A stretch of DNA of 64,000 nucleotides from Podarcis bocagei (taxonomy: Eukaryota), in assembly GCA_964188305.1 (NCBI GenBank), contig OZ076888.1; one strand, written 5' to 3'. Of the stretch, positions 6,301 to 61,936 are shown one piece after another. The position numbers and the translations under genes were made by a program. Numbering within the stretch: position 1 is the stretch's first letter; each line of letters opens with the position of its first letter. The notes beneath the pieces are model-generated. The model did not search any database. It had not been told where the DNA came from and saw nothing but the letters and a program-made list of their open reading frames with translations.

Positions 6301-6798
6301 TGACCCCTTTGATGGAAATGGCTTTGATGCGAACTCCCCTGCTGCATATAAGAACGGGTGCAGCATAGGATCTCACTCTGTATTTCCAGGCTTGCCTGTC
6401 AAGAATTTGAAAAGTTTTGTCATATGAACCAAGTTCATAGCTGTACCAGTTTGTCTGCATTTGATAACCTGTACACTTTACATCCTTGGAGGCCTTTGCT
6501 ATAGTTTTCGTCCTGTAGCTAACCTTTCTGTTGGGTCTCACTTGACATTTGCTGTACTGGATTAGCAGGCGGGGCTGGCTGAGAACAGAATTAGGTTGGT
6601 GGGACAGTGCCTTAGTGGGCCAGCCTGCTCTGGGGAACAACAGTTCTTGTGAACTCCTCAGAAATGGAACGCGTGTTCCAGCAGGACACAGAGACCCCAC
6701 GATATTAGGTACAGACTGTGAAAGCCAATGTAATGGGGAATTTTCAGGGGAGCTGATTTATTTTAAATAAATAACTTACTCAGAAGTACGTTCCACTA

Positions 6799-7138
6799 TG
6801 TCGAGTTGCAGCTCGGCATCCAGGGAAAAATCAGTCTCACACCATGAGGGGTTCCGAAATATGGCTGCTCCTGTATAATGAGAAATAGGTGATTATGATT
6901 TATGGTTTTACTCTGTGGCACAAAAGCCTACAAAGAAATAACCTTTGCCTTTTCTGGAACTTGCATTCTAGGAATACTGATACCCCTGATATATAAAATA
7001 GATAACTCCCAGAGGTTCGTTTGCGTAACAGAAGGGAAGTATAATCACCTATTTCTCATTATACAGGAGCAGCCATATTTCGGAACCCCTCATGGTGTGA
7101 GACTGATTTTTCCCTGGATGCCGAGCACCAACTCGACA
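6799..7138. mobile_element. MITE with 98-bp TIRs, TGT...ACA ends and 5-bp TSD
   Basis: Arms 6799-6896 and 7041-7138 are reverse complements with 2 mismatches; CACTA at 6794-6798 and 7139-7143. Confidence 0.85.
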
Positions 7139-8100
7139 CACTAATGATAAGTGGGAACCTGGGGCTAAAATAGATGTGACATTAAATGTGTATTTGCATT
7201 TAGCACACAGGTTTATTTATATTTTTCATCAATGAAGGATTCACCCCGCTGCAAATACTGGTTTAAGACGTAGGGCTTTCCTCGTGGCCACAGCAGGAGA
7301 GGAAAGAGCTACATTTCTCCTCCAAACTTGCTCCAGTCGTAATAATTATCAAGCCCCTCTCTAAAGTGGGATGCTATTTGCATTTCCCAAAACATCCAGA
7401 TTGCCCATCACTGTTTAGAATTGTTACCTAAATTGGACTATTTGGCTAATGTAGGGGGTTTTTTTAGCCTGTTGTCAAGATTATTCCAAGATTCATGATA
7501 ACCTGGATGAATAATTTTAACAGAAACAAGCTCTTTAAAGTATTTAAGAGATTCTTAAGCCAATGCTTCATAAATATTACCTTTAGCACTTCAGTAGATT
7601 TATATATTTCAAAGTGAAATTAAATGAATTCAGGTTGTCATTTGCAGTACCATTGAATCACTTGGTTTCATTTTTAATAGCTGGATTGTATTGTGTGCAG
7701 AGGCAGCGAACACTGCATTTTTCAACTTCATTTTGCAACCTGAGCTCATTTAAAATAGGCCTTAAAATTCCCACATGGAGCTTGAGATATAATTTGCCAG
7801 ACACCAAGACATAAAGAGTTATGAACGTGCTTTCCCCCAAAGACAATGGATGAATGAATGCACAAGTTAAATGTGATCAAAAATCAGAATGATGTGGACT
7901 ACACTTCTTGTGATATAGGGCTCTGCTCATCCATATGAAATAATGTATTCACTCTCTCAGATGCTTAAGCTGGCTGCTGATATTTATCCCCACAGGAAGA
8001 TCCTGAAAACCAGTTAGAGCAGGTCAGGCACTGCAATATCCTGCAATGGGTGGCTAGGAACATAGGAAGGTGTTTCATACCAGATCATACTATTTGTCCA

Positions 8101-8101
<1 letters not shown>

Positions 8102-8151
<50 letters not shown>

Positions 8152-8565
8152 TTATTTATACCCCGGCCATCTGGCTGGGCTTCCCCAGCCACTCTGGGTG
8201 GCTTCCAACAAAATATTAAAATGCAGCAATGCATCAAACATTAAAAGCTTCCCTAAAGAGGGCTGCCTTCAGATGTCTTCTAAAAGTCTGGTAGTTGTTG
8301 TTCTCTTTGACATCTGCTTGGAGGGTGTTCCACAGGGCAGGTGCCACTACCGAGAAGGCCCTCTGCTTGGCTCCCTGTAACTTGGCTTCTCACAGTGAGG
8401 GAACCACCAGAAGGCCCTCAGTGTCTGGGCGGAACAATGGGGGTGGAGACGCTCCTTCAGATATACTGGACGGAGGCCATTTAGGGCTTTAAAGGTCAGC
8501 ACCAACACTTTGAATTGTGCTTGGAAACATACTAGGAGCCAATGTAGGTCCTTCAAGACCAGTGT
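8102..8565 (-). mobile_element. L2-clade LINE 3' fragment with (TTA)n tail
   Basis: Peptide LHWLLVCFQAQFKVLVLTFKALNGL; 3' stem-loop; microsatellite tail at 8102-8148. Confidence 0.85.
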
Positions 8566-10352
8566 CTTTCAAGACTCTAGTTCAGTATTGCCTTACTGTG
8601 ACTGGCAGTAGGTCTTTCGTGCTTCCTGCTACATAATCTTTTAACCCACAGGTGCTGAACGTTTTACTAGTCATGTGACCCGTGCAAGATTGCAGACCCA
8701 GACAAAATGCCTCTTTTGGGGTGTTGAGTAAAATCGTGGATCCGAAAACCCCCCACTTTTTTCAGGGCAAGATCTTGGCCTGAAATCGTGCAAGAGCAAG
8801 ACACCCAAAATGGCCGCCATATTCTCGCAGGGAAAAGTGGGATGTCCCGGTTTTTCCAAGACAGTTGACAGCTATGCAGTCTACATTAGTAGGACATACA
8901 CATCCTGGTTTGAACAAAACCAGAGAACAAAAATATGGGAGAAGGTTGTGCACTGGAGTTTAAGGAATAAGAAGTTTAAGGTTAATTAATAAGGTTCAGA
9001 TTTTGCCCATGATGACTACTCCTCTTTAGTCTCTGCATATCCTTCGCAGAACTGATCAGGGAGGAAGATGGGGACAAGATTAAAATTAGTTGGCTCTTCC
9101 TGTGATTGGCTCTGGCTCCACTTCCTGTTGCTTTCCCCGCCTTCTGCCCTGTTGGTTCGAATGGGCACCAGTTGCCACTGATTTGGAGACCTGCACAGGG
9201 CAATGGAACTTATACTTCCCTCCATCCTTGTTTGCCCACTAGGCGGTGGCATGTGGTGGGTGTGTGGGCCTTAGTGTCCAAGTGGGTGTCCTTAGGATTG
9301 CAACCTTGAACTCAACAGAAAGTGCCTCGTATTACAGTTAATATTTGCATGCAGATATTATGTACAAAGTGCAAGCACACTGCTTCAGTTTGAAATACAT
9401 GGAAGGCTCTTATGAGGAGGAGGGGAACTCAATCATTTCCTGGTTTCTGCCTCTGTATTTTGAAGGGGGAAAGCATGCAATTTACACACATGGGACCTTT
9501 TTACAACTGCTGAGTAGTCATGTATTTTGGACTCGGAGATATCTGTCATCAAAATGTAGCATGAAAAGCTGCCATTTGGGAGCCTTTTCTGGGCCTTTAC
9601 AGGTGCTGTCCTTCCATTTTATTCTTAATTTATTCCATCTTTTCTTACTGGGGCTAGGGAAGGATGGATCAGTCAATTTCAGTTCTCTCAGTTCCTCGCC
9701 CCCCCCCCCCCTGCCGCCCAATAGGTTCTCTGCATTTATTCAGCAATCTGCAATTCTTTTTTTAAAATCCCTCATAAAAATTCATTAGCATTTATTGCAA
9801 ATTTCTCACAATCAACTCCCCCCCAATTTTGTCTAATAGACACTTTTTTTTTTGCACAACACTTTCCCCAATAAAATGCCTTTTTTGCATGTTATTTTCA
9901 CTAATCTATGCACTCCTATGCACACTTTAGCCTAGTTATGTACATTTTTGTACATATTACTTGGCTGGAGAACCGCACTGGAAAATCTGGAGAGGTGTGA
10001 ATTACAAAGGATGGCTCAGTTCGCATATTGTTTACGAAAGTGTGAATTAAGTGTGAATCATCTTTAAATGCATACTGAATTGAATTCCCTCCCCCTCTCT
10101 ACTTGGGATTTAACTAGACATTATATGTATATACTGTGCTTTTCTTTTTTGGTAAAAAGAAATGATGTGCTGGCACTCTGAGCCAGCTCTGTTTGTCTGT
10201 AGTGGCATCTCACATACCCAGTCTGATTGGCCCATTTCAAAACAGGTGCAGTATATGTGACAGTTGAAATATTAGAAAACATCCATGACAGTGATAAACC
10301 TTGAGCTTTTAAAAATAATACTAATAACAATCATGGGCACCCAATATTACTA

Positions 10353-12560: not shown

Positions 12561-12803
12561 ATAGTACTTAACAAGTCATGCTAGTTAATTACTAATATCT
12601 CATGCTGACTGTGTCTTCAACAGTTTTGTGCTGGCTATTTCTTTCATAGCAAGTCTCAGAACTGGTCCCAAACTTTTCGGGACCTCGGGCAAGCTTCCCT
12701 TAGAGGACCCCCAGAGCATGCTGCTGCTTGGGTCTTCCAGGAGTAAGCAGCCAGCCTCACCTCCTTGCTTGTGGTGGAGCAGTGGGGAGTACCTCCAGCC
12801 CAT

Positions 12804-13255
12804 GTTGTTGTTGTTTAGTCGTTTAGTCGTGTCCGACTCTTCGTGACCTCATGGACCACAGCACGCCAGGCACTCCTGTCCTCCACTGCCTCCTGCAGTT
12901 TGGTCAAACTCATGCTGGTAGCTTCAAGAACACTGTCCAACCATCTCGTCCTCTGTCATCCCCTTCTCCTTGTGCCCTCCATCTTTCCCAGTATCAGGGT
13001 CTTTTCCAGGGAGTCTTCTCTTCTCATGAGGTGGCCAAAGTCTTGGAGCCTCAGCTTCAGGATCTGTCCTTCCAGTGAGCACTCAGGGCTGATTTCCTTA
13101 AGAATGGATAGGTTTCATCTTCTTGCAGTCCACAGGACTCTCAAGAGTCTCCTCCAGCACCATAATTCAAAAGCATCAATTCTTCAGCAATCAGCCTTCT
13201 TTATGGTCCAGCTCTCACTTCCATACATCACTACTGTGAAAACCATAGCTTTAAC
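12804..13255 (-). mobile_element. BovB (RTE) LINE, 5'-truncated
   Basis: (CAA)n tail; near-identical to the 47233-47809 copy; 12-bp TSD cctcca(g/t)cccat (12792-12803, 13256-13267). Confidence 0.92.
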
Positions 13256-14858
13256 CCTCCATCCCATAGACCTCACTAGACCTACCAGACTTCCCTATAT
13301 GGTCCTTGAGGCCATTTCAGCCATGCCATGTCCTCCTGCCTTACACCTGACATCATATATAAACAAACATGACATCAGGTGTGGGGCAGGTAAAGATGTG
13401 GCTGGTCCCAGCTGACCGGTGGCACTTGCAAAGCCCCTTGCATGTTTTTTTGTTTGCAAGCCTACTTAGTTGATCATTGGGACTTGCGTGGGGCTTTGCA
13501 TGACTCCTTGCAAAGCCTGCCAATCAGGTTTAATAAGCTGCCTGACTCCTGAATCGTTACTGCATCATCACTGAGCAAATTTAAGGGAGTACACAAAGGA
13601 ATGGGATGGCAGCCAGCCTCATCCTCTTGCTTGTGAGTGGCTCTGCCCTATAGAAGCACTATACTAGGGCCAGTAATTGTGTGACCACTCACCTCCCATC
13701 CCATTCTGGCACTGCTGCAGCCTCCCAGTAAGGAGGGAGAGGACTGTCACCACCCCCAGCCAATAGTCAGGGATGACTGGAGTCCTGCAACACCTGGGGA
13801 GCCCACAGTTTCTCCACCCCTGGTATAGAGAGAGCCTTAAAAAGTGCCACATAATTGCTCGAAAAGGAAGGCAAAGTATTATTGTTCCATTTGCCAATAA
13901 TCTATAAACACATCTGCCAGGGGGAAATTGATAAAATTTCATACTGGAAAGCACCTAAATTGCATTTCCTTTGCTTTGCCATTGCTGGAAGAGGAAATCA
14001 TATTTTGTTATTTATTTAAAAAAAAAAGTACATGCGGTGACTTCTTTGCATAAAAACACAAAGCTAAGCAGGGAGTTTGGGAGGCTGCGTGGGAGAGCAA
14101 CAGATTTATTTGTTTACATCTCACTTAGACCATTCTATTTATCTTTTCTTATACAGTGCACATCACAGGCCCGAGCTATTCATTATTCAAGGGGTCCTCT
14201 CCTGGTTCTATTGCCAAGTGAACTTGTCATGTGGAACAGTCTTGCTGAAAAATGAAATGGGACAGAAATTTATTCCCCTCTCCCCACCCCCTTTTGTTTT
14301 TTTGCTGGAAAGTACCTTGCTCTCACAAAAGCAAAAATTTGAGGGGCGTCAGGTGCAGGAAAGGAAGCCGTCTTGGTATCTGCTCACAATGCTTGGCCTT
14401 TGCATGCCTGGCGTATGTTCCTAGATGAAGTGTCAGAATGGCAATGTAATGAATAGAGTGTTATAACTTCTTCCAAGAAAACAATGGATACACTGAGGTG
14501 GAGGTTTGGGCTGACATAGGAATTACTGGAGCTGAGTTATGGCATATTTGGAATGTGGTGCAATAGGCAATGGACATGAAATGCAATTCTCTGCATGCTG
14601 ATGATAGTCATCGTGAAGGAGGCTGAAGGAGTGTGTGGATGTAGGTTTATATTCTTCTGCCATCTGTTCATGTTATATATGATAATAAAAGCCTGCGTGA
14701 TCTCCTGGCTGAGTTCAACCTAAAGCAAGAAGTTTCCTGCTGGAATACTCATGAGATGTTGGAAGTTTCAGTCAACCCGTCAGGGTGTCTTCTCTGCTAC
14801 ATTCCAAATCTGCTTAAATTGGAGGTGCTAGTCCAGATCTTCTGTATGTTTGCCCATA

Positions 14859-15100
14859 CAGTGGTACCTCGGGTTAAGTACTTAATTCATTCCAGAGGTC
14901 CGTTCTTAACCTGAAATTGTTCTTAACCTGAAGCACCACTTTAGCTAATGGGGCCTCCAGCTGCTGCCGTGCCGCCGGAACACGATTTCTGTTCTCATCC
15001 TGAAGCAAAGTTCTTAACCCGAGGTACTATTTCTGGGTTAGCGGAGTCTGTAACCTGAAGTGTCTGTAACCTGAAGCGTATGTAACCCGAGGTACCACTG
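14859..15100 (+). mobile_element. Tigger-like MITE, family B
   Basis: TA|CAGTGGTACCTCGGGTTA...TAACCCGAGGTACCACTG|TA; five copies in the window. Confidence 0.9.
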
Positions 15101-16857
15101 TACTTGTCTCATGGAGTTCAGTGCTGCTTACTGGCCATCCTGTCCACATAGGATTTCAGCCACAGTCTGCTAAGAGAGATCTGTTATTATTAACAATCAA
15201 ATGACCTACAGTGTGACAGTCCTTGTCTGCAGGTTTACAATCTAATGAACATGACAGAAGAGGGAAAAGGAATGAGGAGGGAAGAGGAAAATAGTAAGCA
15301 CCCCTTCTTAAAGTTGCATAGATGCTCTTACAATGGCCGACTAACTTGAACAGAGACAATTCAGAGAGGAGAAGAGTCAAATAGCAAATGATCTTCCCAC
15401 CGAGTCCAGGGAGCTGGCTGCCCCATCTCTCCCTCAGCTGCAGCTATGGGAACCACTTAGGATGCATATTTGCATAAAAATTGTATATGCTAATTTATAT
15501 TAAAATTATAATAGATTTAGGAGTAAAATGCTAAACAATTGCTAAAAATAATGACTGAAGTCTGTAACCAGATGACCTGTATGCCAACTCAGACAGCTGC
15601 CCAGCTGCTGACAGTTCAGTCTTCAAGGACCATCCTGTCCCTCCTTCTGGCTCTTTCTCTTTATCTAGATTAGACAGCTCTTCAGATAGAGGACTGCTTG
15701 AAACAGAGGAGTCTTCCCTGTAAAATAAGACATACGGCTACCCTAGCTGCAGCCAGGAGGAATGACTGCTAATAGCTGACATTTCCAGGATAGGATGAGC
15801 CATAGATGATGCTATGCCTTCCAGGATCAATATTGTCTTGACTGTAGGTGGTGAAATTACTGGTTGAGAAACTAGGACATTTCCTGGGATATATCACCAA
15901 CCTCAGAAGTTGCTACTGATAGGGCTGGATAGGACTGTTACAGAAAGATGCTTCTTGAGTTTTGAACTGTGTTTTAGTGACTTTTTGGCAGCATTTATCT
16001 GTCTCAAAAGACAGTGGGGTTCACCTCTGGAGGTGAAGTCAAAATTGCTGCGTTAGCAGCACCAAAGTGACCTTTCCGGGGCACAAGCCTGGGCATGGGC
16101 AGTGTGTATGGACATTCATCAATTACCCTCACTTGGTTTAGTTGGCCAGTCATAGCAGTTTCCGGGATGGGGCCATTGTCACATACTGACAGCTTCTAGA
16201 AGTCACAGACAAGAGCTGAGTGCAGGATGAGAACCAAAGGTGGACAAACTACCCCAAATGGAACACAATGTGTTCCCCATCAGAGGTGGTACTCCTCCCC
16301 TAACACCCAAATACTCCAAAATCCACTGCAGGGTGGACAACATGGGATATATCCATTTGTTGAGGAAGTGCATGCTCCTCAAAGGTATTTACCAGTAATT
16401 GTTCTGAGTTGTTTCCTGCAACCTGCATGTGTGATTTTAATATGTTACCTGAAAGATGATTAGTGCTCTCCAAGCTGAGATAGAAGCTCATGTCAGAAAC
16501 AAAGTACATTGTGCATTGTTTTTCTCTGTAATGCAACCCTCAGAATACAGCAGGACGTTCTTTATCTGTGCCATCAGCAGTCTCTCTGACTGCCTTCCCA
16601 CCATACATTCAAGGCACATGATTTCCCCCAAAGAATCCTGGGAGCTGAAGTTTGTTAAGGGTGTTGAGAATTCTAGGATTGCAAGGGGCAAACTAGATTT
16701 CCCAGGATTCTTTGGGTGGGGTGGGTGCTTTAAATGTATGGCATAAACACAGCCTCCTCCTCTTCCTATATGTCTACTTGCTCTTTGATATACAGTATAG
16801 GTAATCCTGTGCTCTGAGTCCATCATCTTAGTATCTTTAAAGTATTTTATTTTAAAG

Positions 16858-28790: not shown

Positions 28791-29208
28791 GTCACAATTT
28801 GTCCAAACGCTCATTTCTTTAAGCATGCACAGATAGTCTCAGAAGAGGCATGTACCCACCTCACATATTGCAAGGTATAGCATGGATGTTGTTGGTGCTC
28901 TTGTTATTTTTTTGCAGGAGGAAAGCACAATGTGTGACCCACCAGGCAGCCTATAGAAAGGCATGTATTTTGTGACCCTGGTGCTCCACCATACATGGCT
29001 GCTGGTGGCCTGCATTTGGCTTTGGACATCAGAAGCTGAGTTGGTCTGACCTAAAGTGTGAAGTTCCTATGATGCTTATTATATTTTTCATTCCAGCTCT
29101 CCAACAGGATCACTAGGCAAAGGAAGAACATTTCACTAGCTTTCATTTTCCTAAAGCATATTGGCTTTTATAAAGCAATGTGAAATTAAACTCCCCTGTT
29201 ACTTACTA

Positions 29209-29450
29209 CAGTGGTACCTCAGGTTAAGAACTTAATTCATTCCGGAGGTCCGTTCTTAACCTGAAACTGTTCTTAAGCTGAGGTACCACTTTAGCTAATG
29301 GGGCCTCCCGCTGCTGCCGGACCGCCGGAGCATGATTTCTGTTCTCATCCTGAAGCAAAGTTCTTAACCTGAGGTACTATTTCTGGGTTAGCGGAGTCTG
29401 GAACCTGAAGCATCTGGAACCTAAAGCGTCTTGAACCCGAGGTACCACTG
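29209..29450 (+). mobile_element. Tigger-like MITE, family B
   Basis: Same TIRs and TA TSD as 14859-15100. Confidence 0.9.
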
Positions 29451-30979
29451 TACCCACTTCTTGCCAGTTTCCTGTGCATTCCCCCCTCACTTTCTTTACC
29501 TACCCTTTCCCCTTTATCTTCCTGGGTGTTTTCCCAGTTCATAGTATAACTCCCAAAGCTACATCTGTCTCTTAGAGTGTGTGGGTTTTTAATCCCAGCC
29601 AAACTGACAGTGGTCCTTTCCCTCCCAGAAGTTAACAGATTTGTTTCCTGAGCACTCAAAATGCCTGTGACACATTCCATGCCATCTCATCACCTCATCC
29701 AATCAAGAGAATAGATTTTACTGCCAGAAGTGCAATATAATATAGATGGAATTGATGGATCTAAGAGAAGCTCAGTATGTTGCCATAGCAATCAACTGTC
29801 AGAGAGGAAGGCAGAAGAACAAAATATTATGTATCAACACAGCTGCCTGCATTTTTTATTTTTTGCTTTCTTTGTGGGTGTGGCTCCTGCACTCCAAAAT
29901 TTACCACAACACCACTGATCAGAGCTCCTTATCAAATACATACTTTCCCCCCGAAGGAAAATGATTTTAGCCCAGTCCTGAAAACAAGCTTCGTAGTAAT
30001 ACTGAGCTATGGATTGACTTCCTGCCCCCATGGACACCTTCCCCTCTAAATAAACACAGTGGTAATTTTCATTAAGGCTGTAGTGAAATTTTCTTTTCTT
30101 GTCTCTGAAAAGGTGGGCAGGTTTTTGACCTTCTTTGCTAAACTTTTCGCATTTGTAAATGAGTTTTAACTATCTCTGTTTTCCTGCCAGCTACTAAGGC
30201 ATGGGGTGATCTAATCAGTGCACTGGATGTGAGGTAAAGAGTGAGGTTTCTAGTAACACCAGCCATGTAATAGCCCCCTAATTCCACCATTTTTCACTTT
30301 ACCAATGAAATCTTGTTACATCCCTTTTCATTCAACATCTTTGTTTAGCCAAACTCAGATGATAAAGACGCTTAGTTTTTGAAGGGTTTGGTTCCTCTCT
30401 ATTCCTTTTGCAATGGTGATGTGACTATTCTCAGTTTCATCATTTCTTCTTCATTTTTCTTTTCTCTGGATTGTGTGCTGCCAGGACTGTGGAGGTGGAA
30501 AAGTATCAGAGGCGCTTGCTTACCTTGGCAGGTGCTGCTGCTGTTTCATGGAAAAAGGAGGGCAAGATGACAGGAAGGGTGGTGCAGTGCAAATACACCA
30601 GCTTTTGGGGGGCAGGGGGGAGAGAGAATAAACCTCCTTTCTCTCTAGCACCGCAGCCCTGATTCCCCCAAAAGCTAGGTTTTTTAAATGTAAAGACATG
30701 GAGCTTGAGTCAAGAGTATGCAAGCAACCCCAGTGGTGTATGTGTGTCATTCTAGGGACACAAATGGAGCAAATGGCAATCTAGGAGGTGTGCTGCTGTG
30801 CTGTAGAGGTTTCTGGGTTGCAATTCATGGACTGTGATGATCCCCATGGTCCGAAAATTGCAGCTGTCTATCCTGCCTTTGACTTTGGGAAATGGGCCTG
30901 GTGGCGCACCTTTTTGGGGAGCCTAAATACTTTGGGGTCTTCTCCTAGTGGCCTCATTATCTGCTGACACTGGCAGGCC

Positions 30980-39256: not shown

Positions 39257-42200
39257 ATTATATTGCAAGAATGTGGAACAGGATCCAGCCAGTGAGCTGC
39301 GCTCCCTCATGGGCCACTTTGACAATCACCAGATGACATCAAGGATCCTAGCTTCAAAGGAAAGAATCAGGAACCCACAATGCACACTGAGTGTGTTCAA
39401 GATTCTTTTCTTCTTTTCTTTACAGCAAGGCTGCAAAGAAAGATCCCTGCCCAACCTGGGATTTGCACTTGGTGCCAATCAGGGTGGTCTTGGGAACACC
39501 CAAATGTAGCCGATGTCAGTGGGGTCTGCAACCACCACGGGAATTCTCAAGTGGAAGCAATCCAGTGGGGCTTGCATTTGATGCCAAATTTAAGAGGTGC
39601 CAAATACAAGCCCCAGTTGCCAAGGAATAATTGGGAATGCACTTCAAGGTTTCTGATTGTTCCTTTGCAGGCTCTGTAGGAGGTTCATGTGTGTTACCTT
39701 TCCACTGTTGCTACTTGTTACTGCTTTCTTAATTGCAAAGCAATTGCACTGCTGTACAAACATAATTGTTGACATTCCATAATCCAGAGTCCACATGCAT
39801 TTCAATTTCTCAAGGCATGTAAGTACTTGACCAATCTACGCTGTAGTATATTGTTCTGGAAAGCTACCCTGAGGCCATCCAAAGTGATTTTAAAGGTTGC
39901 AATTGGTCTGCACTTATTGATTTCCCACCCCCACTTCTTTCTGTCTTACGGGATCCTGGCAGAGGCGCGAAGTATTACGCATGCTTGCTAGAGACCAGCT
40001 GTTCACTGGGTACAGTGCGACTGCATTAGCTGAACCATCATACTGGTGGTAGGCCAGCTAAATGGGGAGCCCAACTTTATTTTTAGATCTCATTTCATCC
40101 AACCAAAGCAGTAAAGTTCACTGTTTTGCTCATTGCATTTCTTTATTTGCAACTTGAATCACCTTGCTCCCAGCATTTTATTGCAGGGAGAATGGGGAGC
40201 AAGCTTTTATTGAAGGTTTTTAAGAGGCTGGGGGGGGGGTGTTATCAGCACTTAAAGCATTATCATAAGGTATATTGACCAAAGTGAAGAGGTGATAGAG
40301 GTTTCTGCCTATATTGGGTTAATATTTGGTGAAGTAGCTACACAACATTCAAGGTCTCCTCACCACTACCTTACAAAGAATATAGGACTGAGCAAAAATG
40401 CACCTCAGTTAAGTGCTCTGTTTACAGATGGCAAACTGGAGAGACCATTTCAGCACTTTGGGTGACTGCAGTTGTGGAAATGTTCATGGGGTGGAGCTTA
40501 TAAATTGGGGGGCACCCTTTCTGTGGCACCCACTTTTTTACCCAGAATGTCCTGGAACATCCATGGCATTCAGTGGAGTGGAGATTTTGGCTGCCACCTG
40601 TTGTGGTGGAACGAAAACAAAAGCATATAAGACACCCTCCCCCCCCCCATACACACACTATTTAGCCTGACAGCAATGAAATACTTTTTCACAAGTTATA
40701 CTGAAGAAACTGACTCTACCCATGTATAAGTGTTTGTGTAAAGAGTGTATGCCTCTAGATTTGTTCAGCCTAGCTATTGTGTTCAACAGACTATACACTT
40801 GCTGAACATTATATGTACAGCTTAACTATACAGGTACTCAGATGTAATGTGTGAACACCACTTCTGCAAGCTGTTTTGTGATAAGAATTGGTGACTAACT
40901 GCATTATCACCCAGAACATTTTGTGGCTGGGTGGAGATCTGTACGCAGATCCCTCTTACCTAACATTTCTAATTGGGTTCTTGCTCTTTAAAATGTCCCA
41001 CAGTCTATTTATTAGAACATTTGCCTGTGCACACAAAACCTGCATCTTTGTGGACTCCGTTCTAAGAATTGCTATTGGTTCTATTCCTTCTTAGGGTTTG
41101 AAACATCTCTGCTGATCCCTCATTGCAGACTCATCACTTCCTCACCATCTTTCACAGTACTGGCTGTGCCACCTGGACCATAGTGATGCCAAAGACTGGC
41201 CCAAAAACTAAGGTATGTAAGAGAGCAGAAATAGCTCCTGCTTGTCTATCTTAAAGATCTGGTGTGGTTTACTCTGCATCTTTTTGATGATGAATAAATT
41301 GCTGGTATGGTGGAGTGGCCAAACCCTTGCTTCCATTGGAAAGGACTCTTTATCATATTGCACATGCTGGTATGATATCTCCAGCCTTTATCCTCACATC
41401 AACAGGTCTTGTTTCTACTAGAGATCCAGCTTGTGTGCCTTCAGATAGCTAAGCTTGTGATAGCTCCTGAAACTGCCTATTCCTCTTATTATTGGCTGTT
41501 TGAAGATGCTGGAATCTGGAAGTCCCCTGCTTTTCCTCTGCAGACATTGAGGCCCCTGAATTCTGCCATTTCCCAAAACCGATAATACTGGAAAGATCAC
41601 ATAAGGACATGTACCTCATTCTTGTTTCCAAGAAATGTTCCCCTGAGGCCTCCTTCAGTTCAGTCTGTTTTATAATTGGTGGGAATTTCCCCAGCACTGT
41701 CATTGGACTTTCCATGACTTCCTGGGCTTGAGTGTGAAATCTGATAATGCTGGCTCTGAGTCTTCTGTTCTTGCCTGGGAGTATTGGTGCCTCTGTCAGG
41801 GAGACATGAAAAATTCCTACTGCATTGCACTCTACAACACAGTGCTCTCTGGATGAAGAATAAAAGGTGGCTTGCATACCTGTAAATAAACTCTCATGGG
41901 GCCCAAATAAAACAAATAATTGTGTAAACACTGAAACGGATAGCTCCTTCCTCCCAGGCACAATTCAGAAGTCTTGCAGAGTTGGCCTAAGGGGGATACC
42001 AGAGCTTTGCAGATCCATTTGATCAGTGGAGCACAGACTGCTTCCTATATATTTTCATTTCATATTGAAAACTGCTGGTGAAGATGAAGTATTCCCTACT
42101 ATACATTTCCATTACTCGGTGACTCTCACCTGGTTCAGAGTCAAGCAAAAATATGTTGTGTAGCTGTGTGTAAAGCTCATGGGAAATTTTCAGTTACTTT

Positions 42201-42287
42201 GAATATAAGACCTATTCTGGACCAGGTGCACTGGTTGCGTGTTGAGTCCCACAGTGCCACCCACCAAAAATTCACACTTCACACGTG

Positions 42288-43018
42288 ATTTTTTGTTTAA
42301 GGTTTTTGGCATAATTTTGGCCACAACTTTATTAAAATACAAAAAATGTGAGTGGTTGCTTAGGCATTGGTTCCGACTATCTGTCCTTGCCCTCTAGGAC
42401 AGAGCTGGCCCTTCCGGACACCAGCGGAAGCTAGCAATGGGAAACAAGTATTGGGTGAGAAAATGAAGCTGGGTAACAGTTCCTCTCTTCTCACCCTCAT
42501 GTTCCGGTGGGGCTTGCACGGCCCAGGTCCGACTCCGGGGACAAGGACGAAAAGAATGGCAAGCCCCTGGATTCCTTTAACGGAATTCCCTTCGCATCAT
42601 TTGGAGGGATAGGCACTTACCCCTCCAAGCACCAATTTAACCAATGCCTAACCGCCAACCTTACAAGTTGTGACGATTTGCTACGCAGTAGGCAAAAACC
42701 AAATGGCACCAGCCAATCAGCCAGATGGCAAAATTCCTACCAGGCCCCCGCACCAAGGCGGACGACCCCATGACAGGCATAGCAAGGTCAATTGAGCAAA
42801 ACAAAAAACCACCCTATAAAAGGGAGGGAGGGCGGGTGATCCGGTGCAAAACGGCCAAGAGAACGTCCAACGTCTGGCCCCTGTATTTAAAGACTCTGAC
42901 CCCTCCTCCGAATTGGCAACAATCAAAACTCCCCAGCAACCCAATTTAACCACTTAAAGGCTTGGGTTCCTCCAAATTTGCCTAGTCACTACAGGGTGGC
43001 CTGTTTTTCCCAACCGCA
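42288..43018 (-). mobile_element. CpG-rich LTR-like element, possibly a DIRS/Ngaro-type solo repeat
   Basis: 7-bp direct repeat ACACGTG (42281-42287, 43019-43025); minus-strand TTTAAATA then AATAAAGTTGTGGCC near the end. The family call is recalled and uncertain. Confidence 0.55.
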
Positions 43019-43094
43019 ACACGTGCTCTCTGTTATGGAGAACACGCTTTGTCAGGGAATTTCCAGACCCAGTTTAAAGTGCTGGTTTTATCTT

Positions 43095-43300
43095 TACAGT
43101 GTAGATCTAACTGGCTTGGGACCAGGCAGTTTGAAGGACTGCCTGCACCTGCATGAGATTGCCTGGCCCTTAAGATTATCCACAGGGGGCCCACTGGTCA
43201 ACTCCATCAAATTGGCGGGGAGAAAAGACAGAGCCTTTTCAGACATTGCCCCTTCCACTGTGGAATGCCCCTCCCACATGGAGGGTGATTTGTGTCCTTA
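43095..43300 (+). mobile_element. Old L2 3' fragment
   Basis: Peptide LTGLGPGSLKDCL...DRAFS.IAP. Confidence 0.65.
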
Positions 43301-44631
43301 TTAGCTGCTTTCTAAAATGGCTCTCAAAAGACCCAATCAGCTTATTTGCCTTTACAGAAACCTGACTGGGAGCTCTGTCACACAGCTGATTCTACCAGTC
43401 AGCTGATTGCCACTGACAGAACATCTCAATTGCAGGGAGCAATTGGGCACATACCATTTTGTTCCTTAAGATCCATGTCTCTACCTGACCCACACCTGAT
43501 GGTGGGCATGGCTTAGGGGAAATAGCCTCATCAGCTGAGCTGGGACCAATGTTGGCCTGTGGGCCAGAGCTTCCCCACCCCTACTTTAACACACTGATAT
43601 TCCCCTTTTGTTTCTCAACAGCCTCATTTGGGCTGCATCGTTGTCATAAAAAGAGCACCTGAGTTTGTGATTGGTATATAGAAGTGGGCTAAGAATAACA
43701 AGAGCTTTCAGGATTCCATCTACTCCATTCCATCTGCCCCATACCCCAGTTTTCTGCCCCCTCCCAACAGTCAATCATCATTCTGTACCCACTGAGCATT
43801 CTTAGCTCTGATTGGTCTGTCTTGTTTTCTTTTTTTTAATGTGTTGGGTTGGGATGGACATACTTATGCCCAATGCTAGCTACATTAGCAAAATGGATTT
43901 GTCTATTGATTTATATGGGCAGCTCTTACTTCTGTTTCTTGGGGCATAAAATAGTGAACCAGGAAATGCCCTATGCAGACAATGAGATGGTTCTGTCTAA
44001 CCTTTTTATATCCATATGCCTCCTCTTCCATCTTCCTTTCTCAGCCAGTCCATCCCCCTGCCCCACCCAGTTTCATCTCAGCATCCTGTGCTATTAAGCA
44101 TGTTGAGTCCCAATTGGGCTAGAGTGTGTGGGTTGGGTGGTTTCTGTTTTGGCTACAGAGTGAGAGCACTTGGAGAGTTGAAGCAGAACTAGAATAAAGG
44201 ACATAAGGTCATATGATGATTTAAACTGATGGTTAGGAGAGTTAGACAGTTGATGGGGGTTATGCAGGAGAGCTGGGGAAGAGACATGGATGAGTAGGGG
44301 CAGAGGCATTTATGTTTTATAGAAAGGTTGTCATAGCTAAAATGTATACCACTGCATAGCAAATCTACCTATAGGCAAGAGTTTGGGACTCAGGAAAAGA
44401 TGTATTTTTAATCAGCTGCATAAATTCCCAAAGCTGATGTTACAAAAATAGATTATCCATTTGGGTGTTGTGAATCTGTATTTGTTTTTCTTATTGAGGA
44501 ACCAGTTTGAGTAACTTGATAACCTCTCATGCATAACTACCACCTGGCAAGGAAGTAGAAGCAAGTGAGAACGGAGCTCTATGGCAAACACGTTGCGTCC
44601 CGCTTGAATGTAAGCACTAAACCATAAATTA

Positions 44632-44807
44632 GAGGGCACAAGGAGAAGGGGACGACAGAGGACGAGATGGTTGGACAGTGTTCTCGAAGCTACAAACATG
44701 AGCCTAACCAAACTGCGGGAGACAGTGGAAGACAGAAGTGCCTGGCGTGCTCTGGTCTATGGGGTCATGAAGAGTCGGACACGACTAAACGACTAAACAA
44801 CAACAAC
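44632..44807 (+). mobile_element. BovB 3' terminus
   Basis: Reverse complement of the other BovB copies; (AAC)n tail. Confidence 0.9.
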
Positions 44808-47159
44808 ACAACGTGAATGATCTTGTTTGATCAGAACATGGCTTATTATCCTGGGTTGTTAACCAGCATTAACCCAGAATTCCCTGGTTTGGATATAATT
44901 CCGCTTACCTTTTTCATGGCGCCAGCCTCATTGCCACTGACACTAAATTCCTCCTGCTGAACTTCTGGCCAGTGGGAGACAAAACAACCTCTCATGCAAA
45001 CCAGGGGATTTGAATCTGGTCCACCTTTCATTGGGGTTGTAGGTTCACAGTGCCTGGGCATGCCATGGGAAACTCTGGCTTGACAAAAGGCAAGATCTTT
45101 CAGCTGAAACTAGTGCACCTGGGGAGGAGGAACACACATCCACAGTGTTCCTCCATGACTTCAGAAACCATGGTTAACAATGGTATGAATGAACATCTGA
45201 ATGTAGCTATTAAAACTATGTTTTTGCATGTACAAGCAGCTCAGTTGGTGGCATTCTCAGATAGGGTTGAGAAATCCTAGAGAGATCCCCCCCCAATAAT
45301 TTTTCATTTACATACAAGAGCATCATACAACACCAGTAGCTTGTCCAGTGGTACATACCATACAATCAGTAGGTTTATTTATGTATTCTTAGTTCAGATA
45401 TCGTCTGCATAGAGACTCCTGTACTGAGGGTGGAATAAAAATATTTTCCATCTTGTTTATAAAGGAAAAGAAAGGAAGCCAGGTCTCACCAAAAGTGACT
45501 TGAATCGAATTCCTGGACTAGCATGGTCAGGGAAGCAGGTTTTACATCATGGCCTTAGAGAAACGATGCCAGTCAATGCAGATGAGCTTTCACCACTTTG
45601 GCACCCTCCTGATATTTTGGACCCCAACTCCCATCAGTCCCAGGCAGCAGAGCCTGATGTGGACAATACTCAGTAAGATAGGCTAACAACCTGTCTCAGT
45701 AAAGTTGAGTTCCCTATGGCCAATAAACTGTGACTTGTAAGGTAATTGTTGACATGCTATGAGGCACCGACAAATGAGAGAGACAAAAACAGGAAAGAAT
45801 CACGCCACATTCATGAGCTTGCACTCCATGACTGAAAGTCAAGGATCCTTTAATAACCCTTTTGATGGAACTGAAATGTGATTTGTGACTGAAGGCTTCC
45901 CAAATCCACATTACTACCACCATGTCAGTTTTATATCAGTGGAATGTAAATAGACTAATAAGATATCCCATTGTGTTAGCCTGGAGGTAAGTTAAACGTG
46001 CCCTTGAAACCAAAGACAAACTAACACATAATTAAAACTCTCATAGTGAAATCACCCTTGTGGCAGAACTGTGGGTCCTTGTAATGCAAAGGGAAGAGTT
46101 CAGATTAATACCTGGTGCTGCTTGCCATCAGAAAGCCTGGAGCATCTTTGACTGTTACCTCTAGGAACCCATGGAAATCCTGGTCTGATCTGGGATGGGG
46201 TTGGAGGCAGTGAGGAGTTGAAAAGAAACATTACAGAAGGGAAGAAAACCCCTGGAGCTCCCTGTTCCTAAAGGTCAGAAAGGCTATTGACAAGATCACC
46301 AAATCTATTCCCAAATTAGACTTCCATCATTCCATAGAAAGGATGGACTGTGACCTCATGTCAGTACTGTGGTCCATGTGCACAGGTAAAAGAGTGCAGA
46401 GGGTCACCTTCAGCAGCACCTTCCATGCCTCTTCAACCCCTTCATTCACATATGTTCTGCAGACGTGGAGAAAGCTCTTGCAATTTCACAGAATGCAGAA
46501 CTGTACCAGGTGCAGCTTTCCCCACTGCAGTGGGGAACCCCATTGGAACTGATGGAATCTCCCCCCCCCTTCTATTCAACTCTTAAAAGATACCAGTGTC
46601 CTCTCAGGAGCTTCTCTTAGCAAACTGCAACCCTAGATGTGCAACTTGCCACATGCAAAGCTGATCTGTGATCCTACAAATCAGAAATAGTCTTTACCTG
46701 CCCATAAGAATTCCAATGCATTTATCCAGATGTTCTCCACAAAGAGGTCCACACACAAACACCACTTGAGGTCAGGGGTATTTTTTGTTTGACCTATAGC
46801 AAACTTGAATCCCTCCTATGTAGCTCACAGTTACTTCTCTTGAAGCAGTTAATCTCCTTTAGTCCCTGCTCTTCAAACACCAGTAATGTCTGCATTGGAT
46901 TCTGGATCCTACTTTTCTCTCCTGGGAAGACAATCCTCCTGGGAAGACAATTCTGTATTTGCAAAATACTGTGTTGCTGTTTGGCCTGGCTGGCTGAGGA
47001 TGAAGATGCCTTTCCCTTTGGTGCCTATATGCAGTAATCACCATCATCATCTCCTCTGCAAACTGGCTTTCTGTGACCCTGAAGGGACAGGGTCTACAAT
47101 CCCTTCAGACTGAGTCATTCCACAGGCACCAGTCTTCCACAACTTGGTGCTGCCTTTGA

Positions 47160-48365
47160 AAAAGCTTTGGAAGCTTCAGCTTGCCCAGAATGCTGTGGCC
47201 AAACTGCTGACTGAGGCTACTTATAGGGAGCATGTTTGTTGTTGTTGTTTAGTCGTTTAGTCGTTTCCGACTCTGTGACCCCATGGACCAGAGCATGCCA
47301 GGCACTTCTGTCTTCGACTGCCTCCCACAGTTTAGTCAAACTCATGCTGGTAGCTTCAAGAACACTATCCAACCATCTCGTCCTCTGTCGTCCCCTTCTC
47401 CTTGTGCCCTCCATCTTTCCCAACATCTTTTCCAGGGAGTCTTCTCTTCTCATGAGGTGGCCAAAGTATTGGAGCCTCAGCTTCACAATCTGTCCTTCCA
47501 GTGAGCACTCAGGGCTGATTTCCTTAAGAATGGAGAGGTTTGATCTTCTTGCAGTCCATGGGACTCTCCAGCACCATAATTCAAAAGCATCAATTCTTCG
47601 GCGATCAGCCTTCTTTATGGTCCAGCTCTCACTTCCATACATCACTACTGGGAAAACCATAGCTTTAACTATACGGACCTTTGTTGGCAAGGTGATGTCT
47701 CTGCTTCTTAAGATGCTGTCTAGGTTTGACATTTCTTTTCTCCCAAGAAGCAGGTGTCTTTTAATTTCATGAGTGCTGTCACCATCTGCAGTGATCATGG
47801 AGCCCAAGACCCTTTTAAAACAACCTTCCGGGCTACCAGTCCGTTTCCAGGCAGAATTCACAGCGCTGGTTATGACCTATAAAGCACTACTGTATCTGGC
47901 TTGGGCCTAGACTACCTGAAATATATCTCCCCATGTAAACCTGCCCAGGTGCTAAGCTCCTCAGGTGAGCACCAGCCCTCAGTCCCTTCAACAATAGAAG
48001 CATGATTGACGGTGACATGAGAGAGCACTTTTTCTGTGGCTGCTCCCATCTTGCAAAATTCTTTCCCAAGAGAGGTTAGATTGGCTCCCTGTTTGTTATC
48101 CTTCCACCAGCAGGCTAAGTCCAATTCAGACACACCTTACAAAACTAAGGTACAGATGATGCTGATCACTGGGGTGCTATTGGAGCAAACTGTATTTTAA
48201 TTACTGGTTTGAAATGTCTTTTGATGTATTTTAACTATTGTTTTTAACTAATTTGGTTTTGTTACTTTGCATTTTATAATGTTTTAAATGTTGTAAGCCT
48301 CCTTTAGTCCCAGTTTTGGAGAAAGGTGGGATATAAATATATTAAATTAAATTATTATTATTATT
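47160..48365 (+). mobile_element. Old L2 fragment interrupted by BovB
   Basis: ggaagcttcagcttgcccagaatgctgtggcc (KLQLAQNA) upstream; L2 C-terminal region and AT-rich tail downstream. Confidence 0.7.
47233..47809 (-). mobile_element. BovB (RTE) LINE, 5'-truncated, RT C-terminal remnant
   Basis: Peptide LGSMITADGDS.HEIKR.LLLGRK...DITLPTKVRIVKAMVFPVVMYGSESWT is characteristic of BovB. Confidence 0.95.
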
Positions 48366-51665: not shown

Positions 51666-51789
51666 CTACCCTCTTTACTTGACGGGAAAGTAATCTTGAA
51701 TCACTTCTTTTTGTGAGGGGTGGAGGGGAGCTGCTGACTTTGCTGTCCAACTATAGCATTTACATTGTTTACTGTCTTGGATACCATTA

Positions 51790-52004
51790 CAGTGGTACCT
51801 CGGGTTACATACGCTTCAGGTTACGCACTCCCCTAACCCAGAAATAGTGCTTCAAGTTAAGAACTTTGCTTCAGGATGAGAACAGAAATTGTGCTCTGGC
51901 GGCAGGAGGCGCCATTAACTAAAGTGGTGCTTCAGGTTAAGAACAGTTTCAGGTTAAGTACGGACCTCCGGAACGAATTAAGTACTTAACCCGAGGTACC
52001 ACTG
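51790..52004 (-). mobile_element. Tigger-like MITE, family B (inverted)
   Basis: Same TIRs; TA TSD. Confidence 0.9.
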
Positions 52005-52947
52005 TATATTCTTTTATTGCACAAAGTGCTTTTTCCCCTAGGGCTCCTCAAGGCACCTTTCCTTTTTCAAATGTTAAAAGTGTGGCACTTGCTTTAACAG
52101 CTTCATGGTGAGTACTGGCACCTTTCTTTCTAAAAGGAGGGGGGAGGGAGCTCACTAATTGCACATATGCAGTATATGAACAATCTTGAATTTGGGAAAG
52201 ACAATATGGACACAAATGAATAAAGCCACAAGGCATACAAACCCATTGCCAACGACACGCATTGTCTGAAAGCTCACATTTTCTTTCTCGCCATGTCAAT
52301 TAATTCATTTAATAGGATTTCAAGTTTGCTGTGAATATCCAGGTTTTTAGTTGTAATCACAGAGAGTGAGTTCAATTCAGTCTTTGGTCTGCCACACAGG
52401 TGAGGCTGTTTATAACTTGATGTTTTCATTAACACTAAGAAACACCCCTGTAAAATCAGAAAGACATTTTCATCTTAACAATTCCTGATTGAATTGATCA
52501 AACTGGTAATGAAATCTTATCCTGTATGAATGAAAAACAGGAAGAGCAAGAGGAAAATATAGGCTTAATCAGTTCCATGTGCCCTAGGAGGTCTTTGGGT
52601 TTGTATGTCTTGGACAACAGTTCTCTAAGCCAATAGCAAACAACTTTTGAAATGGAGGGAACTTTCAAAAGCAGTTAATGATATTACACAGGGGTCTGTG
52701 GACTTGGGACTGAGCGAATCTATCTATTTCAGTTTCTTTCTCTGTTTTTGTCTTTATTTAGATTAGTTTCTTTTAGCTTGTGAAAAATATTTAATAAAAT
52801 CTTGGTTTGTTTTTATAAAAGAATCACTTCCCCAGTCTTAAGCTGTTCTCCAAATCTGAATCATTTCACATTAAAAATAAATAAATCTTTATGGAAATTC
52901 ACCAGCAATTTCATGCACATTTCCCCTAATGCAATGGAGTTCTGTAT

Positions 52948-53098
52948 GCTGGTATAGCTCAGTCAGTAGAGCATGAGACTCTCAATCTCAGGGTCATGGG
53001 TTTGAGCCCTAACTTGGGCAAAATAAATTTCTGCATTGTAAGGGTTTGGACTAGATGACCCTTGTGACCCCTTCCAGCTCTACAGTACTATGACTCTG
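52948..53098 (+). mobile_element. tRNA-Lys(CTT)-derived SINE with CR1 3' tail
   Basis: Head resembles tRNA-Lys-CTT (tagctcagtcagtagagcatgagactctcaatctcagggtc); tail ggactagatgacc...ccttccagctct is CR1-like. Confidence 0.85.
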
Positions 53099-53104
53099 TT
53101 ATTA

Positions 53105-53319
53105 TAGTGGTACCTCTGGTTAAGAACTTATTTCATTCTGGAGGTCAGTTCTTAACCTGAAACTGTTCTTAACCCGAGGTACCACTTTAGCTAATGGGGT
53201 CTCCCCCCGCCGCCGCACGATTTCTGTTCTGATCCTGAAGCAAAGTTCTTAACCCGAGGTACTATTTCTGGGTTAGCGGAGTTTGTAACCTGAAGCATCT
53301 GTAACCCGAGGTAGCACTG
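53105..53319 (+). mobile_element. Tigger-like MITE, family B
   Basis: TIRs with point changes; TA flanks. Confidence 0.88.
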
Positions 53320-53369
53320 TATTTTTTTTAGTAACGTATGCATTTTCATCAACACTTTTCAATAATATA

Positions 53370-53640
53370 CAGTGGTACCTTGGGTACCTCGGGTACCACT
53401 CGGGTACCTCAGGTTAAGTATTTAATTCGTTCCGGAAGTCCGTTCTTAACCTGAAACTGTTCTTAACCTGAAGCACCACTTTAGCTAATGGGGCCTCCCG
53501 CTGCCGCCGCACCGCCGGAGCACAATTTCTGTTCTGATCCTGAAGCAAAGATCTTAACCTGAAGCACTATTTCTGGGTTAGCGGAGTCGGTAACCTGAAG
53601 CGTATGTAACCTGAAGCGTATGTAACCCGAGGTACCACTC
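53370..53640 (+). mobile_element. Tigger-like MITE, family B, with reiterated left terminus
   Basis: GGTACC unit repeated four times at 53374-53408. Confidence 0.88.
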
Positions 53641-55072
53641 TATGCATTTTTGTCCACATTAATTGGTCAAAGAACTGCATTGCAAACTTTGCAGAAGTCT
53701 GGATTTCGAAGGACAGCTGAGTTTCAGTTTGCATATTGTTTCAGAAAGTGTAAATTAGGTAGTTTCACATTAAAATGGCAAGCCAGTCAAATTTCTCCCA
53801 ATCCCCACCTGTGATTCAAAAGGAGGGAGGAGTCATAGATCTCACTGGCCATGCCCAGTTCTTTTGTTGCAAGCATCCATTTGGATTTGGGAAATGCATT
53901 TCACACACACCCAGTATGAAATGTTCATCCAGCTTTTGCTCTAGCCGAGAAGGTCAGGAGCCTATTGTGATCTGGAGGCTGGGAGGAGAGCTGTGTTGGA
54001 GATTTTTATTTTATCTTGGGAACTGGCAGGGTGTAAAAGATGAAACATTAAGTGCACTGGATGCATTGGTTTTGTTGTCTCCAATTCAGCCTAATTATTA
54101 ATATGCTATGCGGACAGCAATGCTTTATTAATTGTATCAGTAGCTGGTGATCAATGTGACAAGTCAAGTAAAAGAGCACTGTTATTCATCAGAGTTGTCA
54201 ACAGATAATTGTCCTCATATGCATTTGAATAAGACAGAGGAAGAAGCAGAATGAATGTGCTCCTCTTATCACATTTAAGTTTAGCTCTGTAAGTGTCAAC
54301 ACAATTAAAGCTAGGAAGGGCACAAGGCAACACAGAAAGATTCATATTCTGCTATGTTCTGTAATATTCTGGAATGTACATTCCAAAGGGGTCTAAGCCC
54401 CTTCAACTAATCTATAATTCCTAGTGAGTCATACCACTGTTGAAACCCAGCACAAAAGGAAATACTCAACGAACAAGGAGAAAAATCTCCAGACATCTTG
54501 CTGCAATATGTATAATTTAAAGGCTACTTGGACAGAAACAGTAAAGTACTGCATGCAATTGACCATTAAACAATCTGCCATGACATTTTTTGAGCTTTCA
54601 CAAGCAAACAAACGAAAAGAAACCCACAGCAAAACATTTACACGATCCTCAACACAGTGACACAATAGCATGAATTCCAGGATTGTGCTGACGTATACTG
54701 GAAACCATGGGTGGGGGACCAGTGAACCCCTCCAGACATTTTTGGACTACAACTCCCATAATTCCTGACCATCGGCCATGCTGGATGGGGCTGGTGGCAA
54801 TTGGAGTCCCAGCAACATCTGGGGAATCACAGGTTCCCCATCCCTGCTGGAAACCAATGTAGAGATCCTTTACAGTGTCTCTGTGAGTTTCCATTCAAAA
54901 AAATGTCATGTCTTACACAAAGAGAACCACATGATGGAAGTAAGGTGGGATATAAATGTGGGTTATAAATGTACCCATTTAAAAACACCAACTCCTGAAA
55001 GTACATTGAAAAACAGAAGGTGGCCTAATATGAAGAGGAAGCAAAAATAAAACAGAAAAATAAATAAACATA

Positions 55073-61551: not shown

Positions 61552-61612
<61 letters not shown>

Positions 61613-61876
61613 GTGTCTTCGGGTGTCTTCCCGTGTAAGAGTTGGGGTGTCTAGGCGACGTTTCGACGAGGTCTCACTCGTCATCTTCAGGCTGGTGCTT
61701 TCGGCTTCTTGTTACTAGAACAGAGGTCTGTTCTAGTAACAAGAAGCCGAAAGCACCAGCCTGAAGATGACGAGTGAGACCTCGTCGAAACGTCGCCTAG
61801 ACACCCCAACTCTTACACGGGAAGACACCCGAAGACACCAAAACCTACATTCCTGTACCCGTGAAAATCTACGAAA

Positions 61877-61936
<60 letters not shown>
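61552..61936. mobile_element. Penelope-like element inverted remnant within (TA)n
   Basis: 117-bp arms 61608-61724 / 61727-61843, a 35-bp extension, and (TA)n on both sides. Confidence 0.8.
61756..61800 (+). ncRNA. Minimal type I hammerhead ribozyme motif (PLE-type); mirror copy on the minus strand at ~61651-61695
   Basis: CTGAAGA-T-GACGAG-tgagac-CTCGTC-GAAACGTC: both core boxes, 6-bp stem II, palindromic ACGT stem III and GUC triplet; helix I is weak. Confidence 0.65.

Follow-up and report, generated by a model that had tools for sequence, protein, structure and literature searches.

A putative solo Ngaro-type terminal-repeat unit with a six-hairpin domain in a lacertid lizard

Full-length Ngaro elements encode a reverse transcriptase with RNase H and a tyrosine recombinase, without a methyltransferase, and a solo A-B unit of such an element is the counterpart of a solo LTR. 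In retroviruses, structured RNA is found near the 3' repeats or the poly(A) signal, as in the HTLV-1 Rex-responsive element, the TAR and poly(A) hairpins of HIV-1, and the constitutive transport element of MPMV. The terminal repeats of Ngaro are split direct repeats in the layout A1-ORFs-B1A2B2 (PMC9210276, PMC4157794), and isolated AB repeats have been reported from Cafeteria burkhardae, where they were likened to solo LTRs (Hackl et al. 2021, PMC8547959). Elements of the DIRS order integrate by recombining a 3-bp junction with an identical trinucleotide in the target, which leaves no duplication (PMC3266345, PMC7192593). The path of DIRS-1 from RNA to an integrated copy is understood only in part; its cDNA occurs as single-stranded intermediates, most of them linear (PMC7192593). 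Stringent-type LINEs and their SINEs carry 3' stem-loops which are recognised by the reverse transcriptase (PMC5135761). The replication of tyrosine-recombinase retrotransposons is little known, and in the literature searched no cis-acting RNA element has been described for Ngaro.

The window analysed here is a stretch of 64,000 nucleotides from Podarcis bocagei. It holds an insertion at 42235-43048 which is probably a young solo A-B terminal-repeat unit of a Ngaro-type tyrosine-recombinase retrotransposon, from a lacertid lizard and lying on the minus strand. The link to Ngaro is suggested by the anatomy of the junction between the end of the unit and its start. Within the unit is a cluster of six hairpins, and the reading favoured here, at a probability of roughly 0.55, is that a solo Ngaro-type A-B unit carries this fold as a cis-acting 3' domain.

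The inserted unit and its family

The stretch 42100-43200 was compared with four public sequencing runs. In a related species (organism E, run X9), a 1465-nt contig links 42234 directly to 43049 at the depth of the flanks; it spans 42100-42234 and then 43049-43200, with 3 letters ambiguous at the joint. Comparison with this empty site gives a unit of 814 bp at 42235-43048, counting one copy of a 3-nt core. In other copies, flanking DNA begins at 42234/42235 and the ends fall at 42235 and 43048, and the jump in depth and the CpG content mark out the same unit. The sequence-only reading had placed the element at 42288-43018. Those limits were wrong, as the empty-site joint puts the ACACGTG repeat that had suggested them inside the unit.

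A run from organism A, whose flanks are identical to those of the window, holds one contig with the same empty joint, 42234/43049, and an empty allele is present at the insertion site in this organism. A heterozygous individual is hinted at by the left contig, which ends exactly k-1 letters into the joint as at a branch, but the right contig continues across it. The sister species lacks the insertion, and so does one allele or more in the species of the window. The observed/expected ratio of CpG is 0.54 in the unit versus 0.12 in the flanks. Because the empty joint occurs in a run with window-identical flanks and the CpG content has barely decayed, the insertion is recent, and it is probably polymorphic.

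The host flanks within 40001-45000, outside the unit, are strongly CpG-depleted (o/e 0.12), and CpG content is a possible quick age marker for copies of this family. A stretch of about 35 nt in the right flank, 43060-43094, stands out in another way. About 17 RNA read pairs map to it, always with the first mate on the minus strand, and they carry two fixed differences (43067 A>G and 43075 T>C) and run into unlike sequence on either side; the DNA depth is 5,000-10,000. This stretch is probably a piece of another expressed repeat, which was the target of the unit's insertion.

Sequencing depth is about 20-40 in the single-copy flanks versus 10^4-10^6 inside the unit. The unit was matched by 3449 and 7844 contigs, about a quarter of them at least 99% alike, and it belongs to a very abundant, young family with thousands of copies. 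A search of the 64-kb window gave no second copy, even at a word size of 7. The unit is gene-less, and none of its ORFs belongs to a known family; for the ORFs of the unit and window together, the searches gave no Pfam family, no exact product on record and no homologue sharing words. The most abundant 22-mer of the family is absent from public metagenome and viral contigs.

Two kinds of joint recur among the copies. Some contigs run head to tail, from 43030 through 22 nt to 42235, or from 43051 to 42315. Others break at 42791|42792, the centre of a CAATTG (42789-42794), where records 3, 4, 19 and 20 stop fitting; a joint from 42791 to 43009 occurs in two runs, and the depth to the right of the breakpoint is about 5-15-fold lower. 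The CAATTG is therefore listed as a candidate A/B boundary on the strength of the recurrent breakpoint, the joint and the drop in depth. The head-to-tail joints and the 42791|42792 breakpoint are what was seen when the split-repeat layout was checked, and tandem copies would look alike.

The interior at 42396-42543 is about 20-fold rarer than its shoulders. Other subfamilies have an unlike interior between conserved outer arms, as seen from joints of 42371 to 42640 and 42386 to 42545 and from loose ends at 42383 and 42639. One contig of run X16 joins the 5' arm of the outer stem of the hairpin domain to the 3' arm (42371-42640) and skips a 268-nt interior. Copy choice at the stem base while the element was being copied could explain this joint, as could a subfamily with a different interior.

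Several other repeats were observed in the window. A near-perfect palindrome lies at 61552-61936 (arms 61601-61724 and 61727-61850, 98%); an earlier reading had taken it for a Penelope palindrome with hammerheads, and the Rfam gathering scan of the whole window gave no hammerhead there. An Rfam tRNA match of 38.7 bits at 52948-53020 lies just upstream of 53099-53656, which consists of two tandem copies of a repeat of about 260-300 nt, with further copies at 14853-15116 and 29203-29466 and an inverted one at 51788-52007. This repeat is possibly a tRNA-derived SINE family. Three copies of a repeat of at least 400 bp, 92-97% alike and one of them inverted, lie at 12803-13255, 44632-44808 and 47275-47669, with long ORFs on both strands (12843-13415 on plus, 47217-47861 on minus and 47236-47772 on plus) that match no Pfam family. 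Finally, 98-nt inverted arms at 6799-6896 and 7041-7138, 98% complementary and 144 nt apart, form a MITE.

The hairpin domain and its strand

The sequence-only reading had described an outer stem enclosing six hairpins, and all the inverted repeats it listed were found in their places. The domain at 42360-42651 is closed by a perfect 13-bp stem, 42360-42372 with 42639-42651, which is complementary at 13 of 13 positions. The stem pairs verified inside the unit are TCTGTCCT/AGGACAGA, GGGTGAGAA/TTCTCACCC, GGGGCTTGC/GCAAGCCCC and TTGGAGGG/CCCTCCAA, along with a two-step hairpin and the pair ATTCC/GGAAT.

Hairpin 1 (42380-42403) has an 8-bp stem and an 8-nt loop, and its pair probability is 0.97-0.98 on both strands. 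Hairpin 2 (42404-42435), the two-step one, has 6+5 bp with a 2-nt bulge and a G-T pair at 42407/42432; it forms on the plus strand and is lost on the minus strand in the window copy only. Hairpins 3 (42453-42496) and 4 (42509-42567), supported by both repeats and folds, each have a 9-bp stem under a variable top, with variant letters at 42474-42486 in the one and 42526-42540 in the other. In the minimum free energy (MFE) structure, hairpin 5 (42569-42588) consists of the five Watson-Crick pairs of ATTCC/GGAAT and, on the plus strand, of two further pairs that include a G-U; GGGAATTCC lies on the minus strand at 42590-42582. Hairpin 6 (42601-42628), again found by repeats and folds, has an 8-bp stem, and most copies have a G at 42609, just beyond this stem, which would pair with C42620.

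For the energy comparison, 42340-42670 (331 nt) was folded against dinucleotide shuffles, 100 of them on the plus strand. The plus strand folds at -132.3 kcal/mol against -101.4 +/- 5.3 for the shuffles (z -5.84, with 0/100 as good), so that the expectation of a fold better than shuffled sequence was borne out. The minus strand folds at -133.1 kcal/mol (z -5.08). The domain holds 4 perfect hairpins of at least 8 bp where 0.29 are expected, and 0 of 2000 shuffles reach 4. Without the outer stem the interior still has z-scores of -3.3 on plus and -3.6 on minus, and the helices persist, with pair probabilities of 0.94-1.00, when all 814 nt of the unit are folded. Sliding windows of 150 nt gave no strong z-scores because their edges cut the hairpins; the signal belongs to the entire domain. 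The hairpin cluster at 42360-42651 is real and far beyond chance.

A further 9-bp stem, 42288-42296 with 42339-47, which would have enclosed an AATAAA, was dropped, as its pair probability in the ensemble folds is 0. The scan of the whole window at Rfam gathering thresholds gave one tRNA elsewhere and nothing at the hairpin domain. With permissive thresholds, Rfam 15 gave over 41500-43800 only SCARNA21, at 18.2 bits against a threshold of 60 and with an E-value of 0.58, which is chance.

The fold had been described as strand-asymmetric, and this did not hold: the energies are equal (-132.3 on plus and -133.1 on minus), with 8 G-U pairs for the plus strand versus 6 for the minus strand. Of the plus-strand G-T wobbles which had been pointed out, the one at 42407/42432 is present but private to the window copy, since other copies read C at 42432 (16/16 RNA reads and about 95% of DNA contig depth). 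The core stems of the family are mostly Watson-Crick and are uninformative about which strand is in use, because the energies are equal and the variants at 42432 and 42609 restore Watson-Crick pairs elsewhere in the family.

Variation among the copies avoids the stems. Within 42360-42651, 2 of the 18 variant places listed fall in stems, which make up about 130 letters and where about 45% were expected (p ~0.003, a binomial estimate); this count rests on the best 40 of 143 differences, in copies which share descent. One of the two stem variants, 42432, is a Watson-Crick pair in the other copies, and the second, 42397 G>A in a single contig, still pairs on the minus strand only. Free variation is seen at the top of hairpin 3 and of hairpin 4, in the hairpin 2 bulge and in the linkers. 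This pattern seems to fit conserved stems, without being evidence of covariation.

Signals on the minus strand had been put forward as well, and they are present: AATAAA at 42333-42328, which in the minus sense is 14 nt downstream of the extended fold, and the TATA-like TTTAAATA at 42891-42884, with CCAAT upstream at 42916-42912, which by its letters is a candidate promoter in the A part. They are not the only ones, however, as the plus strand has a better TATAAAA at 42815-42821, a strong CCAAT at 42713, and ATTAAA at 42331-42336. There is no poly(A) signal near the 3' end of the plus strand.

RNA data came from one 2026 run of organism E, in which 140 reads fit and for which the library type is not on record. 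Over the subfamily-specific interior, 42396-42506, the first mates are all on plus (17-23 versus 0-0.5), and the mixed variant letters indicate that this RNA comes from at least two source copies. The abundant shoulders have RNA reads in both directions. No pile-ups of RNA starts or ends were listed among the 140 reads of this run. The RNA over 42396-42506 is minus-strand sense RNA if the library is of the usual stranded type, and the sense strand of the unit is probably the minus strand.

It is also possible, though on balance unlikely, that the hairpins have no RNA role and are palindromes at the DNA level, either protein-binding sites like those of a U3 or by-products of fold-back or template switching by reverse transcriptase, carried along in a young family that copies itself fast. 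Binding sites in a row would need no perfect 13-bp stem closing six hairpins, and neutral palindromes would not be expected to show variants that avoid stems (2 of 18 listed against about 45%) or RNA from the sense strand only over the domain. Several observations nonetheless suit palindromes. The stems are mostly Watson-Crick and lack a strand signature, the energies on the two strands are equal, and the interior at 42396-42543 is not only about 20-fold rarer than its shoulders but is replaced by unlike sequence in other subfamilies. In a young family, conservation of the stems may moreover mean shared descent alone.

The sequence-only reading had taken the plus-strand wobbles to mean that the fold may form on cDNA or on an antisense RNA, and that argument lapsed with the equal energies and the private wobble of hairpin 2. 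The idea itself, that the fold is used on single-stranded first-strand cDNA (plus) or on antisense RNA, for example in second-strand priming or in protection of cDNA ends, now seems improbable. All six hairpins form on plus in the window copy and hairpin 2 is lost on minus, but this asymmetry is the private C>T of that copy. Hairpin 2 and the outer-stem extension fold better on plus (slightly so for the extension, at -8.8 versus -7.3), whereas hairpins 3, 4 and 6 fold better on minus. Parameters for DNA favour plus, at -61.0 (z -4.7) versus -57.8 (z -3.3) on minus, but the overall RNA energies are equal, and the stem variant 42397 G>A pairs on minus only. The single-stranded cDNA of DIRS-1 (PMC7192593) would be a precedent for such a use.

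Ends, core and junction

The filled site reads ...ACTGG TTG CGTGTT ... AACACGCT TTG TCAG... and the empty site reads ...ACTGG TTG TCAG.... The TTG (CAA on the minus strand) stands on each side of the unit, at 42235-42237 and at 43049-43051, as placed by the joint with its 3 ambiguous letters and by the flank sequences; it occurs once in the empty site and once in the head-to-tail junction. On the right side, two other copies have TTA in place of TTG (their loose ends are at 43046 and 43050), and the true core may therefore be no longer than TT.

When the end of the unit is joined to its start, the result is AACACGC-TTT-GCGTGTT, a 7-bp inverted repeat around TTT whose arms are AACACGC at 43041-43047 and GCGTGTT at 42237-42243. 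Four ACACG sites lie in the unit (42238, 42281, 43019 and 43042), each of them no more than 55 nt from an end, with the inner ~730 nt free of the motif; the average across the window is about 1 per 1.9 kb. Two of these sites belong to a subterminal ACACGTG, an ACACG overlapping the palindrome CACGTG, at 42281-42287 and with a twin at 43019-43025 at the right end. A scan with the 17-nt junction palindrome gave at least 120 matches, all of them chance matches of 17-26 nt and mostly in bacterial metagenome contigs.

Judged from its letters, the junction resembles the site at which a recombinase would act where B meets A in a circle or a tandem array. The core is common to the flanks, the empty site and the junction, with no duplication of the integrase type, although at a single locus this is indistinguishable from a 3-bp duplication. 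A single core, no target duplication and a palindromic junction together fit integration by a recombinase and not an LTR inserted by an integrase. The proposal of a tyrosine-recombinase retroelement thus stands as far as the behaviour of the terminal repeat goes, with its 3-nt shared core, palindromic junction and lack of integrase-type duplication. A coding partner (reverse transcriptase, RNase H or recombinase) was found for the repeat neither within the window nor via homologues of the ORFs.

The same ends could belong to a non-autonomous cut-and-paste DNA transposon of the MITE type, with 7-bp terminal inverted repeats, GCGTGTT and AACACGC, and a target duplication of 2-3 bp; the hairpins would then be internal palindromes unrelated to any retroelement function. 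TT(G) does stand on both sides, one locus cannot separate a 2-3-bp duplication from a shared core, and two copies have TTA on the right; yet the flanks leave one T beyond a clean TT duplication around the 7-bp arms, and a single core lies where the end of the unit meets its start, as is more readily explained by a B|A junction. The subterminal ACACG repeats are of the kind bound by transposases, and the unit has no ORF and a very high copy number. Against this are the promoter-like and poly(A) signals in an LTR-like arrangement and the strand-specific RNA over the unit, and altogether a transposon of this type has only a slim chance of being correct.

A classical solo LTR of an integrase-type LTR retrotransposon or endogenous retrovirus, which would run from TG at 42286 to CA at 43018 inside a 5-bp ACACG duplication, is very improbable and was rejected, for although TG..CA and the ACACG(TG) repeat stand at exactly those positions and the signals are LTR-like, the empty-site contig puts 42235-42287 and 43019-43048, both of them multi-copy, within the insertion and gives true ends of TTGCG.. 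and ..ACGCT.

Helitrons and Helentrons have a 5'-TC and a CTRR-3' end with a subterminal hairpin at the 3' side, and they insert into AT or TT without duplication. This class was rejected as well: the ends here are TTGCGTG.. and ..AACACGCT on plus, or AGCGTGTT.. and ..ACACGCAA on minus, and only the T-rich target fits.

A Ngaro-type reading and its closest relatives

If the unit is a solo A-B repeat of a Ngaro-type element, the sense RNA would start on the minus strand in the A part, 43048-42792, which holds the TATA-like box, and the B part, 42791-42235, would supply the AATAAA after which it terminates. The transcript would then run from A1 to B2 without both ends of the element, and under the split-repeat model the internal B1|A2 junction would carry those ends. 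That would place the fold in B, with the AATAAA 14 nt beyond it, and each genomic RNA would hold two copies, one in B1 and the other in B2. Its most plausible role in this position would be a cis-acting one, as a compact domain which is recognised at packaging or at the start of reverse transcription, or which stabilises or exports the unspliced RNA. A cis-acting 3' RNA domain of this kind is the preferred functional reading of the fold, a tentative one held at just short of even odds.

A bolder version, which we consider unlikely, is that the domain of about 290 nt is a new, selected family of cis-acting RNA in squamate Ngaro-type elements, and that the 0.8-kb unit moves alone as a small circle. 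The domain might, for example, mark the template for the element's own reverse transcriptase or Gag. The circle would carry the palindromic B|A recombination site, and many solo units would be direct insertions by the recombinase, not remnants of deletion.

The family appears to have been active recently, and it combines a junction resembling a recombination site with a large stable fold beside a poly(A) signal. It offers a natural setting for asking whether the signals that direct copying and integration reside in RNA, in single-stranded cDNA or in a circle. Should the hairpins prove to be neutral palindromes, the unit would be unremarkable, a well-delimited solo repeat of a lizard transposon with many copies.

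Among known systems, the 3' stem-loops of LINEs and SINEs are similar in being a structured 3' element that may mark the template for the element's own reverse transcriptase. They are single short hairpins at the extreme 3' end, whereas the domain here has 290 nt and six hairpins and appears to belong to a recombinase-type element. The structured RNAs near retroviral 3' ends share with it a large, stable, multi-branch fold in a terminal repeat, placed shortly before AAUAAA on the RNA presumed to be sense. They differ in that the domain here has no match in sequence or in Rfam, and its stems are mostly Watson-Crick palindromes without a strand signature.

DIRS1-like elements (Piednoel et al. 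2011, PMC3266345; Malicki et al. 2020, PMC7192593) show the same flanking trinucleotide, absence of duplication and self-complementary junction. They have inverted terminal repeats with an internal complementary region and mostly NTT termini, whereas the unit here seems to be of the direct-repeat type, with TTG/CAA and, in two other copies, TTA on one side.

The unit also resembles the solo AB repeats of Ngaro (PMC8547959, PMC9210276, PMC4157794). The present element differs in being known from its repeat alone, with an A/B boundary at 42791|42792 that is deduced here, and no structured domain has been described for Ngaro repeats in the literature searched. Both are gene-less units of a few hundred base pairs with many scattered copies and LTR-like signals, and in some contigs the end of the unit here meets its start, as would be expected of a B1|A2 junction.
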